Shown here: positions 25,801 to 52,654 of the stretch, in pieces | Position numbering within the stretch: position 1 is the stretch's first letter | How the letters are laid out: the number at the start of each line of letters is the position of its first letter | NCBI GenBank assembly: GCA_965637545.1 | Contig: OZ281495.1 | Location: 7,874,001-7,938,000 of the forward strand | Length of the DNA stretch: 64,000 bases | Source of the DNA: Phallusia mammillata | Lineage: Eukaryota | Direction: 5' to 3' | Program-made: the position numbers and the translations under genes | Notes under the pieces: generated by a model | Databases searched by the model: none | Told to the model about the DNA's origin: nothing | What the model saw: only the letters and a program-made list of their open reading frames with translations

Positions 25801-27376
25801 TTTGTCCTGAAAACAAAATATTACCATCCAAAAAACATAAGTTTTTGTTGCAACAATATATTCTTTATTAATATACATATAATTTAATATATTCTGATGT
25901 AAATTATTTTAATCCGATCTGAAATCACAAGCCTTTAAAATGTGTAGACTCAACAAACACAATAAACGATGACATGAATACCTAAGTAGGATTTCAAGAT
26001 TTGAAAATGTTATAAATGTTACATACGAATTTGGAAATGGGTTGAAAAGTTTTAAATATGCTTTAGACCAATTTTATAGTTAGTGTCTGCTGTATTAGCA
26101 CCATCAATAATGGTGACACACATCATAATCATTAGGTTGCATCTATTTTTCAACTTTTTTGTCTCATATAATCTCGAAATCTCGACTTATTTTCTCGAGA
26201 AAATAACAAAGGTTATGTTCCAGTATGCTTTAGAAGCAAGATGAAACAGAAAATAAACAAAGTAAAGGGGTGCCACAATAACCTTTCGTTTTTAAAACAT
26301 GACATTGTTTTTTATGTGAGAATTTTTATTCATATATTGAGAGTTGAAAACCAGATTTTTTTAAGATTTCTTGAGAATTTCTTGAGAAGAAACTCTTATA
26401 ATGACATTGTAGCAGCAACTCATATAACGATAATTGATTAACAGTGCCTTTATATTTATTATTCACCAGAACTTCTTAATATTGTACAGCTTTTTCTGGC
26501 TTCTTTTTTTTTGTAAATGAAAATTTTTTTCACAAATTAATATGACAACAACTAATCGATGAGTGGTTTGTACTTTTACCTTAGGAATAGTAACTGAATG
26601 CATGTCAACAATGCTGTAATAAATCGTGGCTGGCTTTTCCTGCATTGCAACCCAATGTTTAATTGCTCCCAAATAATTTCCAATGTGTGGAATTCCAGTT
26701 GGTTGAATGCCCGAAAATATAACTTCCTCTTTCTGTAACAAAAAATATATGGATAAACAAATGCAGGGGAAAAATATAAAAATACATTCGAGTAAAAAAA
26801 CTTAAGGTTTGCCTTTCATGAAATAAATAAACTGAATGTGACACCACAAAACATGTACAGAGAATCTTTTACAAAGTTATTGTTATAGCAAAAAAACCCA
26901 CTATAACAAGTTGTGTACATTCTCTTATATTGTCAAAACACTTTTAAAAAATCCAAGCATGCTTATAGATTAAATTGTTTTTCACTCAAATTTGTTATTA
27001 TTGTGTTGGTTTCAGATGGCACCAACAACACCTAATTTTATTTTCAAAATCCAGTACTTCAGATTAAAAAAAACTGACTTAGAAGTCATTTTGAAAGTTA
27101 AATTAAGTGCTCAAAGACTATTCAAACCAAATTTGTTATATTTTAATTTTTGATAATATACTTTAGGAAAATGTAGTTGCATAATGTTGTGACACTAAAT
27201 ATCCAGTATTACAGTACATTCAGCCAAACCAAGTTCAAAAATCAGTAATATTTTTCAGATCCACGTACCGGTGTTGGGTAGTTGGATTTTGAGGAAAACA
27301 TTCGTGAGACATTCGCAGCGTAAAACCTACATCCGCTGAACTGCAGTAAAACTGAACGTAATTTTCTGCCTGCCAT
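22867..27376 (-). CDS. WARS2: Mitochondrial tryptophanyl-tRNA synthetase
   Basis: 7 exons: 27376-27269, 26732-26580, 25806-25627, 25095-24990, 24844-24746, 23793-23594, 23121-22867. Transit-peptide-like N-terminus, [15 protein letters not shown] (HIGH motif), [23 protein letters not shown]. Confidence 0.95.
23261..23500. mobile_element. hAT-Charlie-like MITE in WARS2 intron 6
   Basis: TIR CAGTGGTTCTCAACCT / AGGTTGAGGACCACTG, TSD ATCTACAC / ATCTAAAC. Confidence 0.85.
24280..24600 (+). mobile_element. Short internally deleted copy of the Helentron/DINE-like element at 55.4-57.35 kb
   Basis: 24280-24445 matches the reverse complement of 57186-57350, and 24553-24598 matches the reverse complement of 55420-55465. 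Terminal hairpin GTGTCCCCTT-CAGGG-AAGGGGACAC. Confidence 0.7.
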
Positions 27377-31421: not shown

Positions 31422-34400
31422 TCAGATGGAAACAGCCAGTGGTATCTTTTCTGGCAGCAAATAGTCGTATGCTATCTTGGTGGCTTCGTTGCGGGAACGC
31501 ATAACCGACGACAAACGTTGCAGTTCGTCTCTGAAATGCACGACAGCCCGCTGAGCAGAATCTTCAATGAAGAGACTAGTGGGGTAGTCAGCCAAGTAGA
31601 TCTGTCATAAGTAAAGTGTAAATAACAACATAAATTTTACCGTAAAAGAAATAAAGATGATTAGATGAATCAAATACCGAAGTTTAACAAATTCGACCAG
31701 GAAGTTTTTTTTAGGAATACGGGGCTGTAATTTCTAAATGGGGATGTTCACCAAAAAAACTGCTACATCGAATAATGGGATCTTTTAGGCTTTTTATTGC
31801 TCTGACATCGTATTATGGTGATGGCCATTGTTGCCAGTGTAGCGGTTTTCCAGCCGAATTAGGCTGGTTTCGGATATCGAAATGAGTTTTTTTTCACTTT
31901 TGTAGTTTTTGGCGGGTCGCCAGAGCTTTTTTTAATTTAACGTGCATTTTAATATGTATGCGTTTTTGCAAGCAGGGTAATGATGGTAAAATTAACCTCG
32001 TATTGGGCTTGTTTATATTTTAAAGCTATCAGGTAATGGCAGAAACATATGCCCATCTTCACATTGAATGGAAATGGTAAAAACAAATAGTTTCAAAAAA
32101 ATTGGAATCAAATATGTTTCATTGCAATTTTACCTGGTCGTCTGGTTGTTTGGAGAAGATGTGAGAAACTGACGCTTGAAGACAGCTGAGTGGTTTGCTT
32201 GGAAGGGTTTGCATCACAGTATCATGAGTGGCCTTGAAATGTAAATACACAATCATTATATTTATGTTCAGAAGTTCATATCTCACAACAGATTTGAAGC
32301 ATTTCAACCTTGCCCTTCTCGATAGGCGGCGGCAAAGAGGTGCTGAATGGAGCATTTGGAACGTTGATGCAGATGTCAAAAATCCCGTTTGTCACTGCTG
32401 CGTAGCGACACGAAGCGGTGAAAATGATTGATGTCATAAAGTCGCACAGCTCATCCACTGTAAGAAAGCTGTTTGGGACACCTGAAATCATAACAACAGA
32501 ATTTCAATCGCTTGAAGGCGACCAGAAGCTTCAGTCTTACTCCATTTGATTCAGTTTTTGCCACTCTTAAAAGGCCTTTTACTCAATTTAAATCAGATTT
32601 TCAAAGAACAAAGCATGTACAAAATACACAAGCTGTAAGCAAACGCTTAATTTGAGTTTGTTCTGAAATCAAATTGTCAGCTGTAAAACGTACGCCCAAA
32701 GTTAAGATTGACCAATAATTTCTTTTTGCAGACTGGTTTCGCAACATCAAAACGCTTAGAATACGCATGGATGTGATAAACTATAGTTCCCAATGCTACC
32801 TTTGTCTTTTCCGTCCTGCCAGGCAAAACCTTCATTCCGAATTTCTTTAATACATTTTTGGAGTTCCTCGTCCTCTTGTACTTCCTGCAGGTACAGTCAA
32901 ATACTTAGTAGTCATTTTACCCACAATATAAATAGCCATTTTCCCCCACTTTTAAACTATACACTTTTTATTTTGAAGTCATTTATGCTTTATGGTATTG
33001 GAAACAGGTTTCGACCAAAATAAATTTATGCTAACTTACTAAACATTTTATTTTTGGAATTATTTGTTTAAACAAACATGGAAGTCGCTACGTCCTTTGC
33101 GCGGCTGGCGTTTATCAACATGAAACTCAATCTGATATACCTCGTTTCCCTGGTAAAATATTCCCATAATTTTGCCCGTGAAGCGCCGAATACAATCCCA
33201 CAGCATCAAGGCATCGTCTCTGAAGTAATAACTCGGCAGTTTGGAACGGTCGTCGGTGCCGTTGGAGGCAAGCAGTTTCCGAATGTTGAGTTGATCGTAA
33301 TCGAAGTTACGGAAAGCGGATTGCAGAATATGCTGCTGCGAACCACCACCTGAAGAAAGTACAAATATTTGGTTTCAAAACGGGACCCGAAAGTACAAGC
33401 CCAAAACTCGACCAAAAAAAACTAGAATCCGACTTAAAGAAATCCAAAATCGGACCCATTAATAAGAAATATCAAGGCAAAATAATGGCACAAGAAATGT
33501 GCAGTCAGGTCCAAATCAAACCTGTTTTATTCAACCTTAAAAGGCCTGTGGTGATTAACATTTTCAAGGTGAAGAATAACAATGAGCATAAGTTTAGTCG
33601 ACAATTTGTTTAACTCCGTCCAAATATATGAAATTGGTTTCGACGCAGATGACTAGACTTGTGTCACATGAAGAGGGTTTAACCTCTATCCATAGTTTCC
33701 TCTGTAGTTTTATGACCCATAACGTTCGATCATCGCAAATATATTTCCGACTTTGTGATTGTTATAGTGCGATTGTTTCGAGTAACATAAACTTAACACC
33801 ATTGATATTATATGAGTCATTGTTTTCTATTTTGAATTATTATTTTTTCTAGTGCTATTTGAATTTGTAAATCCACACGCCAGTTTATTCTTGTCAAGTC
33901 TTTAGTCAACAGACATAACTTTCTCAAGCTGCCAAACGCCGGGCGAGAGAATATTTACTTAATACAAACTACAAGGTTAAAGAGTTGCCAAAACGGTTAA
34001 AAATAAGAAGCATGTCAAATCCATACATGGCAGGCGAAAATCGAGTCGTTTATTTTTTTACACCATGCCTTACCGAACGACAAGAGACGGTCCAGTACGC
34101 CGCCGTTAGCCAGCAGTTGTTTTCGAAGAACCATGTTTCCACCACAAACATAACGAAGATGCGGGGTAAGGAGTTTCAGCACTGGGTGGTTGGCAGACAA
34201 ACAACGACTGATTCCCAAAGCAAACGGCTCCAAAACAAGATGAGTCTGAAGTACTTTTTCTGCCAACTAAGAAATACAGATTGAGATTTTGGTTGCGATA
34301 TCTTGGCTTGCTTTTGGTTTTTATTATAGTTTATTGAAGTGAATCCTAACTCGAGGTTTGTGGCCCTAAGCCTAAAGGATCAGATACTCACGGTCAATAA

Positions 34401-37400
34401 GCAGAGAATTTACAACGAATTTTTAGGTTTCATAAAAGTTGGTAAAAATGCTTTTTTTAATAATGCTATTTGTTTATCCGACAAATCAAATGGATTTCGG
34501 TTTCTGATCTACATTTTAATCTTTTCCGTGCCCATTTTGATTGAGGTATAATGTACACAGTTTGCCAAAAGAGCTTGATGTAGGCTACATTTACGTGAAG
34601 CTATTAAACAGTGTTTTTTTGCAAAAATTGGGAATGCCTTGTACTATTACTTTGCGTGCAAAACTATAGATACAAGCAGCGCAATTTATCCGACCCTTAC
34701 CATCTGCACGTTGCTCTCAGCGTTCCGAAAATACATCTTTGCGATCATCCAGTCACAATCAGAGTCATTGGGCGTCCAAATCGAGTTATTGGGGCCCGGT
34801 CGCTGCCATAGCTGAATTGCGATTGGTACCAAGTTCTTCTTATAGTTCGCGTAAAGCAAACACATTGGAGTGCAAGAGAAGAAGACAGAGTTGTTAAGAG
34901 GGTTGCGGCCGCAAGGAAGCCCTTCCAACATCTGTAAGTCTACGATGTAAATGTTGCCATCCTGTATAGAGGAAAAAACGATGATTAAAGACGAAATGTT
35001 ATTCATACAGCAAAAGTTTTTTAACGAGACTGGCACTCAACCCTGTAAGCACAGATAGAGGGCCAGCTTCATGGAGCAATTCAGTATGACGCATCAGGTT
35101 CTTACTCGTATTGCCATTATTATACCCCATAGGGAGATTTAGAGATTATTTGGCGACGCAAGAGTAAAAATAGTTGGCAAAGACCAGTCGAAAAGCTGCG
35201 AAGTTTTGTGAGCATGAAGTGTTTTTTTAATAATTTTCTTGGGTAAATGATTGGTGGATTAATTTAAACACCTTTATTTCTTCTTCCAACGTCATGCCTC
35301 TCGTGAGCAGTGATCCCACCATCGAGTTGGTCACTGGAAACTTCTTCGGAATAACATCGCATCTCTTTAGCACAGTGGGATCGCAACCGTTCATGATCTG
35401 ACGCCCAAACTCCTCATCTCTTTCCCAGCTACAAGGTATAGTTACATTCATTTATGACAAGGTATATCAATGACTGGTGTTCAAACAAGAAATGCCAATC
35501 ACTTCTTAAACAATTAAACATAAAGGAAATTGCGGGGTTAAGCACAGACAATTACCACAACGTACTTGTATTTAACCGAACAGTTTTGAAAAAGATTTTA
35601 TCAGAACCAAATAAGCACTTGCCAATCATATCAAAAGAAACAAAAAATTTTCTATTCATTTGACTAGAAATTTTCATGTGAACTTTAGTAGCCACTTAAA
35701 AAAGGGTAAATGTAGATATAATGTTTCTTACTTCTGGTGATAATCAGGAATCTTCGGGAGCTTGGGATGAGTGAATACGTTCTTAATTTCTGTCAGGTTC
35801 TCACATTTGTCGAAAACCCCTTAACGGCAAACAAACCAGGTTAGTATGGACATCAAAAAGGTTTATAATAAAACTGGTTTTACTATTAATTAGTAAGTGT
35901 TGGCAAACAACAAAATGCAGATGTTTGTTTGTGCAACAGCATACCTTGAAATTTATCAAAAAGATAATTCTTTGAATTCTTCCTGGATTCGTCGAATTCC
36001 TTCATCATTCCTTCATCCAACCGAAAGTTACGCGGCAAATCTTCCATACAGTCACCGGCCATGTAACCTTCAAAAAACGTTTGGTTGCCAATTTTAAGTA
36101 AAATTACAAACAAATGTTTCAGTAAATGGACGCATAACAAGTGCCAATAATCCATTTTTGGTAAGAATGTTTTGTACATATTTTTTGCACAAAAATATTT
36201 AGCCCAACTGAAATTAGCTAGAAGGTCATTTGGATTGGGTGTTTTCATAAATCGTCACATGATTGATACCTGGCAACCCTTGAGCCTCCTCGTCATCTTG
36301 ACAACGCCACTTGATGTCGCGCTTTTTCATGGCGAGTTCGTTCTTTCGATGGGAAATGAGGACAGGGTTCTCCTCGTGCTGAGGAAGCTTTGCTGCAAAG
36401 TCGTTCCGATTGTTTGAACACAGAATAAGTAAACAAATATCAACAGTAAACAAGACCAATCGGCTTTCTTGTTCCTCAAATAAACATACAGTAAATGGAA
36501 ACGGAAGCTTTTATATTTTAAAAAGAAATAATTTTGGTCTAAATGTTTTTGCACGGGTCGTAAAGAATTCCGAGTCTTTCGGAGTTATTTAATGTATGCT
36601 TAAAGTTGTTTTGTCACAGACCATGTTTTTTCATGTGGTTGGAACCCAGGTCGCTCCCTAGGACAAATTTCGTTAAGTTTTTTTCAAGATGTCTGTATAC
36701 AGGCGACGTAAGCGCACTAAACCACTTGGGCAATTTCTTGTCACAGTCACATTAGATTTTACCTGTTCCGATAGCAACATCGGTCGTGCCTGTGACCCAC
36801 ATGTTAATAGGAAACCTGTAAATGGCGCTGTCACCACCTTTTTGGATCGTCACCGACACGACATACCAGTCAGCGAACATTCCCGATTCGTCGTATTCTG
36901 AAACGTAATGCACATGTTTCTATTGCAGAAATCTTACGAGAAAGTAAAGAGTTTGAATTTGGAAAATTTGTCTTTTAAACGGCACGATCGAACGCTTCAA
37001 TGTTTGGCAAGACACAAACTTGTTACAATTTTGCCATTATGAAGTCGTTACATAAACTGTAACTTGATGATATATGATGGGTACAACAGGACAGCAACTT
37101 CTTAAAAAACAGTAACTAAGTTACAAAAAATAAGACATTATTTTATGTGTAATTTACACTTTTTCAAATTAGTTTTATAAAATTATACTTCAGTAAGGTT
37201 ATAAAGCCGCATAGGCGAAATATACTTATCTTCAATTCACAAAAATGAATGACTTGATGTCCTAATAATTTTGAATCAATAGTGTCACAAAACTGTTCAC
37301 GTTACTTACTGATGGTCAGAATGACAGGCTGACCAATGTCCTCTAACTTGACCTTGAAGCGGTCCACTCGGCCCCGTTCAAAATCGTCATGGAAGGAATT

Positions 37401-37842
37401 ATCGAGTTTTGCCAGCGACGTCTTATCACCGCTAGCGCCAGTAATCGCGATCGAAACATTTGAATCTGTGCCGGCATATTTCATCGAACCAGTCTAAATA
37501 TTAAGAAGACGTAACTACGCCACAGATTTAAAAGGTGGGCTTGACTAACACGAAGTGACTTTTTATCATGGTTAAATAGGTTTGAAAGACATATTTGTTT
37601 ATTTAGTCACTAGGAACAATATCTGTTGCAAATTTCGCTTTTTGTCCGAAAACGCCATTTAGCATCAACATGTGGTTTAGTCACTGTTGAATATGATGTA
37701 AAGAAAACTTTTTTTAAAATTGTCATAGAAAACTTACCGTGACAGTGATACTGTAAACAACCTTTCCTTCATCACGAAACGGACTTGGAGGAATCAAATG
37801 CTGCATAGCGTTCGACTTGATGTTGCGGAAGTTTTCCAACAT
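31422..37842 (-). CDS. Lipoxygenase-fold protein (PLAT + LOX domain), 704 aa, iron ligands largely substituted
   Basis: 14 GT-AG exons, all in phase (2115 nt): 37842-37738, 37493-37310, 36897-36763, 36392-36270, 36067-35945, 35819-35732, 35428-35272, 34961-34701, 34266-34074, 33349-33141, 32884-32800, 32481-32309, 32232-32134, 31601-31422. Motifs AGTDSNV..DDFERG (PLAT), WERDEEFGRQIMNG, VPIAIQL, HPVLKLLTPH, YYFRDDAL, PNAP; ends VSI*. Confidence 0.93.
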
Positions 37843-44415: not shown

Positions 44416-45934
<1,519 letters not shown>

Positions 45935-46176
45935 TGTGGTTTTCTGTAAAACATATCATCCTCAGTTTGTGAAAACCTAGACATGTCATGTAACAGAAAC
46001 CACTCAACAAATCTTTGAAGCTTATAACTGCAAAGAGCAGGTCTCGCATAGTATTATTTACAATAAACTTCGTTGGATAAGGCGAATTTACAGTTTGCAA
46101 CAAAAGTGTAACTTTTTAAAACTTAAAAAAATAAGAAAATTCAAAAATTTCGACCCCCCAAAAAAACACGACCTAC

Positions 46177-48913: not shown

Positions 48914-51900
48914 CTCTGAGTTTTGTTTAAACTATTGAAAACAAAAAAGTACTGCTCTATGAACTGCACAATACGCCGATTTTCAAAATTCCAAATCTTG
49001 CTGCACTCTTTAGGAACTTGTTTTGGTCGCGTAAAAACAATCTCTGACACTATCAGTCTTTGACGTAGCCCATGTAAGTCCTGTTTACTTATTTTCCACA
49101 AAGATTTTTTGTTTACAATTTGCAAACATAATAGTTGTATTCTTGTATATTATTTGTAGTGTTTAAACAATTTATAATAAAATTCAAAAAAGTGCTTAGA
49201 CAAAGAAATAACCACCATAACATTTAACAAATTTGTATCCTCGCTACGATCCAACTGAATAACAAGTGTTATTTTGCGAACACTTACGGTATTCAAGTTC
49301 GGCAGCTGTCATGATGACACTGACAAGGGCTTTGGCAACAGTATGAGCCAAAGCCTTCATTTCAGCACGGTCAAAAGAGCTGAACATTGGCAAATTTTGT
49401 ATAGTGTCTCGCAAAGCAGGCGGTCCTAAGAGCCTTCCATCGATCGGACTGGCGCAATTGGGTAAAATTTTGTCATCATCTCATCTCCTATTCAATTCAA
49501 GTCAATTGTAAAAGATATCGGAAATGATTTTTTTCTTGTGTCTGTTGTCAGCAGAAAACCAGGTTCAGTGCAGTACGTAACTAATAATATATAATTGGAC
49601 ATTTTTTGGCTAGATTCGCAAAGTATAACCATCCGACTTGTTTCATTTCACTGTGGAATATTTGCATTTGAGCTTGATTCAGATTTAATTTCTTGTGTTT
49701 GGCATCGAGCATACGGTTGATTAGGTTTCTAAGAAATGGTACAAATCAACCAACACAAAATAAAAATTAACTAGCCTACTGTAAAGTTTACTCGTAGTTT
49801 CTTTGTCTTGCTTATGAAATCTTTGTTTTCTGAGCGTGTTGATTAAACATAACATTGTGCAAACAACTGATTAAGATATTTATTGAGTTGATTGTGTTTG
49901 ATTGGTCATTCCTGTCTTCAGTCGAACTTGTCGTATCAAAGAATCATCTGCAAGTCATTCGGTCGAAAGAAAACTCGTTACCCTCAGACTAGTATGGTTG
50001 ACAGACTTGAACTTAGCGAAGGTTTGATAGCGCTGCAAATTAAGTTTGACGAATGGTGGTAACGAGGCTTGTCATTTTTAAACGGCCTCAATAAACTTTT
50101 TTGCAACGATGACTAGTAGACCGAGTTTAATTCGAAATTTGTGAAATAAAACGTATGACAAACAATTGGTTTGTTTTTGGATGGGTTTGCCTCGGACCTG
50201 CGCTCTAGAGCTACAAAATATATTATCAGCTACCCTATGCACAAGTGCAAAGTGCAAAGAAGACTAAAAAAATACATAGTCCATCTTTTTACCACAACAG
50301 CATCGGGACAAAACCGTGACCGAGCGCTCGGCGTCGCAGGTCGTCGCGCAAATTTGAAGCTCGTTTACTTTGACGATGCGACGGGCGATAAATAAGCGCT
50401 TCTGCTTGCCGCGGGCCACGGGATAGCGCTTATCTTTCTTCGCGCGTCAGTCGCGCCGGGGCTTCGGGATCGCTGGGTCGTCGCGCCACTTTGGGATTTG
50501 ACACTTGGGCAACGGTGCGATGTCTTTTTAGTGTGCGGGAAGGCGTCGCAAGGTATATGAAGGTGTCAGTGAGCTGAATGCTGCGTGTCGTCTAGCTCAA
50601 GTCGCTGCCCGTCACCGTGTACTTAGACGCCAGACCTGTTTTGATAGATGACAGACGGCCGCCTGGAAAACGACGAGAGAGTCATGTAGAAAACAGCCAG
50701 CTAGTAAGAACAAGCCCTGTTGTAAAACGGTCTCGCAAACAACGGTTTAGTACAGGCGAACGTATCTGAATGTAACCAGAAAAACTGTTTGCTGCTTGTA
50801 AGGTTTTGTTTTGTAAAAGTCAGGCTGAAACATATTGTCACACAGTCGATAAGTGTAAGATCTTTACATTGTATTGTATAGGTTGTACATGTAGAGGCAG
50901 GCAGAAATGCAATACGTAAACCATCGACCCGTACTGTATTGCTATAGTGCAGGTCTTGTTAGAAACTTTAAGCATGAAACAAGTTTCGACAAGTTGAGTT
51001 AAGTTGAGTTTTTCAAAGTCATTTCTTTTATATTTTTGTTGGGTCAAAATGTTGAAGACCTTGCTATAGAGTGTAGAACTTACAAGTTGAACCACTTCAC
51101 CAATATATCCATACGGTTCTTCTGTACTGTGGTATAGTATAGTCATACCAAGCTGAACACAAACAGAAGCTGAGGCAACAATTCCCAAGCATAAGTGGCT
51201 TTTCGTGTGCAATTAGTTAAGCACCCCGCGGTTGGGAGTGGAACATTGAACAGCAGTCTCAGAGAGAATGGCTGGATGGTGGTCGTGCTGCTGGCAGAAC
51301 TGCTTGTACACGCCAAGGCATGTAATTTGATAAAACGCCTTGTGACAAATAATACCAGCGCAGTCGGCCGAAGCGACTTAATAACTAGGATTTGCCTCAG
51401 ACCTCGTACTTTCGAGCTTTGTGATTCAAGCGTTTGTTTGATGGGATTTTGTTATTGACGCAATATACTTGAAAAACTCCCATAGGAATGCCCGTCGCGG
51501 AACTGTAAAGCCTCGTTCACGAGCAATCATTCTGCTTCAGACCGTGACCGGTTTTTGACTTGTATATTAGTGAAGTGTAAAAAACGTCTTGTGACTCGCT
51601 TTTAGCACAAACAAGACAATTGTGGCACAATAACCGCGCCGCAGTCGCCAAACAATTGAGAAACCGCCGCCGCTGCAAGGTAACCGCATTCTTTCGGTTG
51701 CCAGCCCTCGGCAAGACACAGCGGTTGGTTGGTCACGTGACACTGCGGGAGGTCGTGCGTTTTACGAGTTCAAGTCCGAATGAGACGTTAAAAGGACAAA
51801 CTCGCCCTCGGTTGGGGCTTGCCGGCTGTGGTACGTCTTTTGGACGACAGACGCCGTATCTGCCTACTGTGACATTTGCAATCCTCCCCTTGTCGTCTGC

Positions 51901-52654
51901 TGGTTTCATCAAATGCTCGCCCGGATTTTTGAGGCCTCCATTGTTGTATTGAATTGCGGCATTGTGCGGTCTGTCTCGGACCCGCTGGGAGCTGAAAGCA
52001 TTCAGATTTTAATCGAACGGTTTTCGGGCAGTGGTCCGTGGTTTAAGGTTTGTGTCGCGTTGTAGGATCTTGAAAGCTTTGAAACATAATTTTCTTTGGA
52101 CATGTTCTAACATCTATGCCTAATTCCCATGTTATGCCTAATTCCCATGCCCGACATTTTGCCACACAAATCCACGTGAACACCTCGTGCAGTTTACAAC
52201 TGCGCGGTCACGCCCATGCCCCGCCCTTACAACGGTCAGGATATTATATGCTGAAATTTCTCTGCGGTAAGGCCTATCCCTTAGCAGAACACTAAATAAT
52301 TCGGTTTTGAACGCATTGTTAGCATTGCGTTTGTAAGCCAGGAATGCAAATGCCATTTGATACAATGATTTGATTTAAATTGATTTTGCCGTTTTTATTT
52401 TATAGCTACCCCTCTCAAAAAGGTTACGGTCTGGATTTATCATTTTTTTCGGGTTTATTTGTTGTTGTGTTTCATCATTGGATCGGTTCAATGAGTTCAT
52501 TGGACCATACGTAGACTGGTCTTTAAATATATGGATTGTGTTTCCAGCGGTGTATGTAGGCCTATGTACATGTTAGCCTTACAAAATGTTATCAATGTTT
52601 GCTGGTTTGTTCGGAGTATTATTGATGAACGTTGAGAGAGTTTTGTGTTGATCG

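Follow-up and report, generated by a model that had tools for sequence, protein, structure and literature searches.

The window analysed here is a 64,000-nucleotide stretch of the genome of the ascidian Phallusia mammillata (contig OZ281495.1, positions 7,874,001 to 7,938,000). On its minus strand, at 31422..37842, lies a lipoxygenase (LOX) gene of 14 exons (704 codons and a stop codon), defined by spliced RNA contigs from three studies, which lacks residues that hold the catalytic iron in other LOXs. We consider its product to be a conserved protein with the LOX fold that is not an iron dioxygenase and that has been kept by selection, a reading to which we give a probability of about 0.8. Judged from its ligand positions, the protein very likely binds no catalytic iron and is no fatty-acid dioxygenase. 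The gene is best read as a member of an ancient, ascidian-wide LOX branch in which the two-domain fold would have been kept and the non-heme iron centre dismantled.

The ligand positions are numbered here after human ALOX5. Lys396 (codon AAA, 34255-34257) stands opposite the iron ligand His367, and Tyr581 (TAC, 32402-32404) opposite the iron ligand His550. His401 (CAT, 34240-34242), opposite His372, is a retained ligand, Thr585 (ACA, 32390-32392) stands opposite Asn554, and the C-terminal residue is Ile704 (ATC, 31425-31427); all of these codons are on the minus strand. An earlier annotation made from the letters of the window (the sequence-only reading) had placed the same five residues at these codons, and the open reading frame (ORF) built from RNA bears this out. 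It had also proposed an alignment to ALOX-type LOXs, in which Lys indeed falls at His367, Tyr at His550, and Thr at Asn554, whether the comparison is with Stable-5-LOX (3O8Y), ALOX15B, or 29 canonical LOXs. The exon with Tyr581 aligned without gaps to human ALOX15B (FTASCRYAAVT against FTCSAKHAAVS) and also matched 5-LOX chains in phmmer searches. The full-length orthologue from Ciona aligned to 3O8Y without gaps, with the pairs Lys/His367, His/His372, Ser/His550, and Thr/Asn554. The C-termini of these two proteins end together, and across the ligand-less ascidian clade described below and the canonical LOXs the C-termini likewise align without overhang. In an alignment of 34 sequences, His occupies the 367 position in every one of the 29 canonical LOXs and the 550 position in 28 of them.

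Three of the five ligands were counted as lost in the sequence-only reading. The losses of His367 and His550 stand, but the change of Asn554 to Thr does not count as a third. Since active human ALOX15B has Ser at this position, Thr585 is not disabling alone and is by itself not diagnostic. The change of the C-terminal PNS to PLA had been taken as a further sign of loss, but the canonical ascidian LOXs have PIS and LOX relatives with full ligand sets have PAG, and thus this change is not diagnostic either. By the alignments, two ligand losses are decisive, that of His367 (now Lys) and that of His550 (now Tyr). A catalytically competent LOX has three His, a fourth ligand that is Asn, His, or Ser, and the C-terminal carboxylate; with Lys at 367 and Tyr at 550, the protein in the window does not have this set.

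The gene model was examined with Logan contigs of three RNA studies (X1, X2, and X10) and of one DNA run (X9) aligned to positions 31500-37499 of the window. The RNA contigs are 2313-2728 nt long, lie on the minus strand, and contain 12 splice joints within this region, each of them GT..AG, while the X9 contig is continuous across the same region and unspliced. Intron 1 (37494-37737) is marked by a loose end of the RNA contig at 37494, which matches the end of exon 1 (CT..AC boundary at shift -1). All 13 introns are GT..AG (CT..AC on the plus strand). The joined exons give an ORF of 704 amino acids (aa) from the ATG at 37842 to the TGA at 31422-31424, and the same frame is closed by a stop 13 codons before the ATG. 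The stop-free minus-strand stretches in 31422-37842 translate to PLAT and lipoxygenase pieces. Public runs from the same organism contain 0.20-0.27 of the words sampled from the 6.5-kb stretch, which is about its exon share. Fully spliced transcripts of the gene are present in three independent studies, and the exons, frame, and splice sites read from RNA are those of the intact 14-exon, 704-aa model claimed before.

The coding part of exon 1 (37738..37842, ATG at 37840-37842) holds an N-terminal extension of 28 aa followed by the start of PLAT, and the loose end of the RNA contig joins it to exon 2. Exon 2 (37310..37493; Pfam PLAT, E = 3.6e-8) and exon 3 (36763..36897; PLAT second half, Pfam PLAT, E = 1e-4) encode most of this domain, and exon 4 (36270..36392) encodes its end and the linker. 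The catalytic-type domain starts in exon 5 (35945..36067), where Phe207 and Arg211 stand opposite the 'cork' residues Phe177 and Tyr181 of ALOX5. Arg211 is also a candidate counterpart of the entrance residue Arg182 of 8R-LOX, although a phmmer search of exon 5 against the PDB gave only chance matches to ferredoxin reductase. Exon 6 (35732..35819) and exon 7 (35272..35428; weak Pfam Lipoxygenase match) are followed by exon 8 (34701..34961), which encodes WxxAK as well as the N-terminal half of the first ligand helix (ending in NVQM). The second half of this helix, LAEKVLQTHL with Lys396 and His401, is in exon 9 (34074..34266), which matched Pfam Lipoxygenase (E = 6.4e-13) and, in phmmer searches, ALOX12, 8R-LOX, and 5-LOX. 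Exon 10 (33141..33349) and exon 11 (32800..32884) lead to exon 12 (32309..32481), which encodes the second ligand helix (FTASCRYAAVT). Exon 13 (32134..32232) and the coding part of exon 14 (31422..31601, ending in PLAVSI and the stop codon) complete the gene. All of these exons are on the minus strand, and RNA joints were read for exons 2 to 14. Searched one exon at a time against Pfam, several exons had no match, among them the 116-aa exon 8. A separate X1 contig of 182 nt and low depth lies at 36557-36738, inside intron 3 (36393-36762); it may come from an unspliced precursor, from carried-over DNA, or from a small transcript that has nothing to do with the gene.

The Lys codon lies just four codons past an exon junction, and a wrong splice choice or a sequencing error at the ligand codons could in principle have produced an apparent loss. 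However, the junction was read directly in the RNA contigs of all three studies, and the orthologues share both the junction and the Lys. Exons 9 and 12, which hold the ligand codons, are matched letter for letter by two of the RNA contigs (X1 and X2) and by the X9 DNA contig, although the assembly may itself derive from X9. These three contigs thus show Lys and Tyr codons where reads with His codons would have spoken against the sequence-only reading. The X10 contig has one or two differences, at positions not listed, in the two ligand-codon exons and is no confirmation of the codons. It also carries 34811 G>T in exon 8 (Leu356Ile), which is a conservative polymorphism or a strain difference. 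An artefact of the gene model or the assembly is refuted by the RNA and DNA contigs, and we consider its chance negligible.

Both families that define the lipoxygenase superfamily, PLAT (PF01477) and Lipoxygenase (PF00305), were found on the exons, with the E values 3.6e-8 and 6.4e-13 given above, and the orthologue P0151 matched both over its full length. The structure was modelled on the Ciona orthologue with AlphaFold2 (AF2) from an alignment of 35 rows. The model has a mean predicted local distance difference test score (pLDDT) of 89.6 and a predicted template-modelling (TM) score (pTM) of 0.90, with pLDDT below 50 at residues 1-24. Its best structural matches were coral 8R-LOX and human Stable-5-LOX (TM score 0.89-0.94, root-mean-square deviation 2.1-2.9 angstroms over about 690 columns). 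The solved animal LOXs (coral 8R-LOX 4QWT/3FG1/2FNQ, Stable-5-LOX 3O8Y, and 15-LOX-2 4NRE) have the same architecture of PLAT and helical domain and are about 34% identical over the full length. Shared with them are WxxAK, His372, Leu414, Arg411, and, in P. mammillata and both Ciona species, the C-terminal Ile, and Leu368, Leu373, and Leu607 are either unchanged or replaced by similar residues.

Orthologues were sought with exon 8 as query in a library of 1.84 billion proteins, and 492 relatives were found, one 682-aa protein being far ahead of the rest. The orthologues are in Ciona savignyi (H2YSA1, 682 aa, 64% identity to the protein in the window), Ciona intestinalis (XP_078490221 / XP_002123813 / F6Z015, 705 aa, 64%), Clavelina lepadiformis (CAK8694229 / XP_076801952, 706 aa, 62%), and Styela clava (XP_039253840, 700 aa, 46%). 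A profile of these four, searched against a collection of 5.8 billion proteins, found no further members of the clade, the next match scoring 653 against 1284 bits. The columns His367/His372/His550/Asn554/C-terminus read K/H/Y/T/I in P. mammillata, K/H/S/T/I in C. intestinalis, K/H/N/S/I in C. savignyi, K/H/Q/S/L in Clavelina, and R/H/Q/N/V in Styela. Across the clade there is thus a cationic residue at the 367 position, and the 550 position is always polar, never His, and otherwise variable. The sequence-only reading had proposed a search of tunicate genomes for orthologues with the same K/Y/T substitutions. All four ascidians have Lys or Arg at 367 and a residue other than His at 550. Lys recurs in three of them (Styela has Arg) and Thr in C. 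intestinalis; Tyr was found in P. mammillata only.

The five proteins formed one clade with 100% support in the Shimodaira–Hasegawa-like approximate likelihood ratio test (SH-aLRT) in two maximum-likelihood (ML) trees. The topology was Styela, (Clavelina, (P. mammillata, (C. intestinalis, C. savignyi))), with P. mammillata nearer to Ciona than to Clavelina. This is also the accepted relationship of the ascidian species. Exact mapping of the proteins to their genomic loci gave 14 exons in C. intestinalis, Clavelina (two assemblies), and Styela, with lengths that match nearly one for one. The shared loss spans the three ascidian groups sampled, and by its distribution over these proteins it is older than the divergence of Styela from the other four species, which is the deepest in the sample.

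Some conservation of gene order was found as well. RPS27A, a ubiquitin-ribosomal protein S27a fusion gene, lies at 44419-45974 (minus strand) in the window, about 6.6 kb upstream of the LOX gene and on the same strand, and a copy with about 95% amino-acid identity is also upstream of the Clavelina orthologue, again on the strand of the LOX gene. No synteny was found with the flanks of the Ciona or Styela orthologues, only with those of Clavelina. The Ciona orthologue has a GMC oxidoreductase gene (L001 493-5417) in front of it and the Clavelina orthologue a sulfotransferase gene (L002 12949-14397) behind it; tblastx detected neither of these neighbours in the window.

The public names of these proteins suggest other relationships. 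The Ciona and Clavelina orthologues are named '5-lipoxygenase-like' by NCBI, and vertebrate ALOX5 is the best-scoring solved structure by sequence, with about 35% identity. However, the vertebrate LOXs formed their own clade with 100% support, which was not sister to the ascidian clade in either tree, the ascidian proteins lack the iron ligands, and the ALOX5-specific residues Tyr181, Phe359, Ala424, Asn425, Trp599, His600, and Ala603 are not kept in them. Orthology to ALOX5 was therefore rejected. The Styela orthologue is named 'allene oxide synthase-lipoxygenase-like' (AOS-LOX), but a fusion of this kind was also rejected, since the clade proteins are 700-706 aa long, have only PLAT and Lipoxygenase by Pfam, and carry at the N-terminus just the 28-residue extension, which is disordered in the model of the orthologue.

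We estimated selection on the clade from codon substitutions. Nonsynonymous divergence (dN) is 0.20-0.51 between pairs, and synonymous divergence (dS) is saturated. Pairwise dN/dS by NG86 and YN00 fails because of this saturation, and the ML and codon-model values are rough. The GY codon model with four species gave an omega (dN/dS) of 0.027 overall, 0.020 for PLAT, and 0.028 for the catalytic-type domain. At short range, the two Clavelina assemblies differ by 2 residues and the C. intestinalis and C. robusta entries by 11, all of them conservative. Canonical LOXs with H/H/H/N and a C-terminal Ile are also encoded by these animals, three in Ciona and one in Styela. The path from Ciona to Styela measures 1.20 among the ligand-less proteins and 1.66-1.79 among the canonical ascidian LOXs, and therefore the ligand-less proteins are not evolving faster than the canonical ones. 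By these estimates the clade is under strong purifying selection, beside canonical LOX genes with all ligands.

The loss of two essential ligands resembles a first inactivating step, and the gene might be a recently inactivated one that is still transcribed while it becomes a pseudogene. However, the same loss is present in five species across the deepest sampled split, the ORFs are intact and the exon structure is identical in the three orthologues with DNA, omega is about 0.03, and the transcript was spliced and expressed in three studies. Recent pseudogenization is refuted by the five-species loss, the shared exons, the tree, and omega, and its probability is in our view vanishingly small. 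The sequence-only reading had named dN/dS near 1 without expression as the result that would argue for decay; omega of about 0.03 in an expressed gene is the opposite. Its claim that an intact gene is kept by selection for a non-catalytic role is supported by the expression, the shared loss, the 14 exons, dN far below dS, and the absence of faster evolution. Pseudoenzymes are recognised by homology to an enzyme with loss of essential catalytic residues, both of which are seen here, and by purifying selection across species, for which there are five intact ORFs, shared exons, the species-tree topology, the low omega, and spliced RNA.

To see where conservation had moved, we compared the clade with the 29 canonical LOXs. 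There are 121 columns conserved at 85% or more in the canonical set, of which 94 persist in four or all five of the clade proteins. Fourteen of the 121 are lost in the clade, including His367, His550, Asn554, the second-sphere residue Gln557, and Ser670 near the C-terminus. Besides the ligands (His367 to Lys/Arg, His550 to Tyr/Ser/Asn/Gln), the surroundings of the former metal site also differ from those of the solved animal LOXs. Gln363 is changed to Met or Leu and Gln557 to Ile or Leu, so that both are mostly hydrophobic, and Ile406 is changed to Gly or Ala. Leu368 (Val in P. mammillata), Leu414, and Arg411 are retained, and Leu373 and Leu607 are Leu or Phe. Styela retains Gln363, Asn554, Gln557, and His432, which fits a stepwise decay of the iron centre after the first two substitutions.

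The two domains also differ in how well they are conserved. Between the protein in the window and other clade members, identity in PLAT and in the catalytic-type domain is 78 against 61%, 71 against 61%, and 58 against 45%, and PLAT is higher in every pair within the clade, in contrast to the solved LOXs. Among canonical LOXs, five of six within-group pairs show the reverse (catalytic domain above PLAT), and one distant cross-group pair is about equal. In a sliding-window comparison, the largest excess of clade conservation was at residues 46-105, in PLAT (exon 2), and the relative loss of conservation was at residues 391-405 and 571-590, the two ligand helices. The canonical set was equally or more conserved only in these two helices and in a stretch between residues 491 and 575. 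The calcium-ligand positions of ALOX5, Asn43/Asp44/Glu46, are Asp(Asn)/Asp/Glu in the clade (D/D/E in P. mammillata). Thus, as far as the alignments indicate, conservation is shifted from the ligand helices to the PLAT domain. Another difference from the solved LOXs is the N-terminal extension of 28 aa (MLENFR..SNAM.HL.P; residues 1-28, 37759-37842, minus strand), which precedes PLAT and is common to the clade. It is missing in ALOX5, whose alignment to the Ciona orthologue begins at residue 30.

These comparisons also bear on whether a metal could still be used. The protein might still be a metal-dependent oxygenase or a hydroperoxide-transforming enzyme with a remodelled centre made of His401, the C-terminal carboxylate, Tyr581, and perhaps water. 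His401 is present in all five proteins, the C-terminal residues are I/I/I/L/V, most of the hydrophobic channel residues are kept, and the fold is complete in the orthologue model. However, conservation across the clade extends to just two of the five ligand positions, and the Tyr is found in P. mammillata only, the other members having Ser, Asn, Gln, and Gln. The Tyr-based metal site that the sequence-only reading had offered as an alternative is for this reason disfavoured. The conserved Lys/Arg puts a positive charge at the third position, which should keep a metal cation away, hydrophobic residues replace the second-sphere Gln363 and Gln557 in four of the five members, and the ligand helices show the greatest relative loss of conservation. 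We therefore regard a remodelled metal centre as unlikely.

A metal-free enzyme with a new chemistry seems less likely still. The buried Lys could be a nucleophile or base that acts on lipids, for example through a Schiff base with a lipid aldehyde or ketone. Four of the five members have this Lys in a region that is now more hydrophobic, and selection on the catalytic-type domain is strong (omega 0.028), but Styela has Arg, which is incapable of forming a Schiff base. Moreover, no other clade-specific polar catalytic residue occurs among the 14 changed conserved columns, and constraint peaks on PLAT and not near the pocket.

For the non-catalytic LOX-fold protein that we prefer, a mechanism can be suggested, and we give it as a whole (Lys/Arg for iron, lipid uptake, and a PLAT-centred role) about an even chance. 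The side chain of Lys is about as long as the distance from the C-alpha of a ligand His to the iron. The cationic end of the conserved Lys/Arg may thus occupy the former iron position and neutralise the retained, buried C-terminal carboxylate. It might be hydrogen-bonded by His401 and by the always-polar residue at 581, and the fold would be stable without a metal. Such filling of the metal position would explain why the cation at the 396 position is constant, why position 581 is polar yet otherwise free, and why the exact C-terminal length is kept. The pocket near the old metal site appears to be more hydrophobic and roomier, and a fatty acyl chain is probably still taken up. The strongest constraint is on the PLAT domain, with acidic residues at the calcium-ligand positions. 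A hydrophobic, enlarged pocket together with a constrained PLAT suggests that selection has acted on the binding of lipids and of membranes or partners. The likeliest role would be that of a calcium- or membrane-responsive lipid-binding or scaffolding protein, which is possibly a partner or competitor of active LOXs in the same animal.

Several observations weigh against this picture of a non-catalytic protein. His401 and the C-terminal carboxylate remain and are compatible with a weak or different metal site. The modelled protein is the Ciona orthologue, 64% identical to that in the window. Conservation in the clade and in the canonical LOXs was compared across sets of unequal phylogenetic depth, and the branches are at or near dS saturation, so that omega is only rough, though far below 1. 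Finally, the Ciona orthologue F6Z015 was absent from the searched supplements of a Ciona larval proteome (PMC13225635), in which two canonical LOXs are present; this is a weak negative.

The closest comparison within the same animals is with the canonical ascidian LOXs (F6UJG6, F7AWK4, and 'arachidonate 5-lipoxygenase isoform X1' in Ciona, and an XP entry of 689 aa named 'AOS-LOX-like' in Styela). They have the same domains as the ligand-less clade and are in the same unresolved tree group (84% SH-aLRT), but they keep H/H/H/N and Ile, form a separate clade with 100% support, and have the longer Ciona-Styela path. Among other metalloenzymes, the carbonic anhydrase-related protein CA VIII has Arg in place of a lost zinc ligand, which would parallel the Lys/Arg here. 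CA VIII has a conserved metalloenzyme fold that lost a metal-binding histidine and was repurposed for regulation by binding (PMC13253706), and the ascidian clade would likewise be a metalloenzyme fold turned into a conserved pseudoenzyme. However, its fold and its metal are different, and its partner IP3R1 and its inactivity are known by experiment, whereas the inactivity of the clade is predicted from sequence. For human 5-lipoxygenase (5-LO), a catalytically inactive mutant restores the expression of target genes (PMC11065698), and an inactive delta-13 splice isoform is described as inhibiting product formation by the active enzyme (PMC4501781). These are also cases of a LOX protein that acts without oxygenase activity, but they concern moonlighting or splice variants of an active gene, whereas the ascidian protein would be the product of a separate gene that is fixed as inactive.

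Ligand-less LOX domains were also found in amphioxus (Branchiostoma; P0005, P0083, and P0021) and in Nematostella (P0030/P0281). At His367/His372/His550/Asn554, the amphioxus proteins have H/H/R/A (P0005), N/Q/Y/N (P0083), and L/H/N/T (P0021), and the Nematostella protein P0281 has R/H/F/N, with Arg at 367 as in Styela. These 'AOS-LOX-like' proteins are about 1000-1140 aa long, compared with 700-706 aa in the ascidian clade. P0005 has a weak catalase-related match at its N-terminus, and the other three have no Pfam family there. The three amphioxus proteins formed one clade and the Nematostella protein grouped with the anemone AOS-LOX. Since these proteins are in other clades, their ligand losses are independent, and ligand-less LOX domains may be recurrent. 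The fullest form of our proposal is a metal-free LOX-fold regulator of lipids that responds to calcium or membranes, with Lys/Arg in place of iron, and pseudo-LOXs that arose repeatedly in marine invertebrates (independently in amphioxus and the sea anemone). We hold it only tentatively, a little short of even odds.

The rest of the window contained no other lipoxygenase paralogue (tblastn), and scans of the window with Rfam and for tRNA genes found nothing. At 26466-26801 (minus strand) there is an exon for the N-terminal part of a class I tRNA synthetase of the Trp/Tyr type (Pfam tRNA-synt_1b, E = 2.4e-12). The window is AT-rich (GC 0.32-0.46) and contains no N. GC rises to 0.46 in 50001-52000, against 0.32-0.40 elsewhere, and the long ORFs there have no Pfam match.

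Neither ligand-less ascidian LOXs or their accessions nor a natural pseudo-lipoxygenase turned up in the literature searched, which included few subscription journals and in which LOXs are treated as obligate iron (or manganese) enzymes. The gene in the window thus probably encodes, judging by its ligand positions and conservation, a conserved non-catalytic ('pseudo') lipoxygenase of a kind not found described. The public names '5-lipoxygenase-like' and 'allene oxide synthase-lipoxygenase-like' are misleading for the reconstruction of tunicate pathways. The clade would be a natural experiment on the LOX fold without its metal and on how a side chain can replace a buried metal site, and it bears on the debated activity-independent functions of human 5-LO. 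The proposal is readily testable, since both CRISPR and single-cell expression atlases are available for the genetic model Ciona. If it is true, pseudo-lipoxygenases would be a recurrent and so far unrecognised class of proteins in marine invertebrates.

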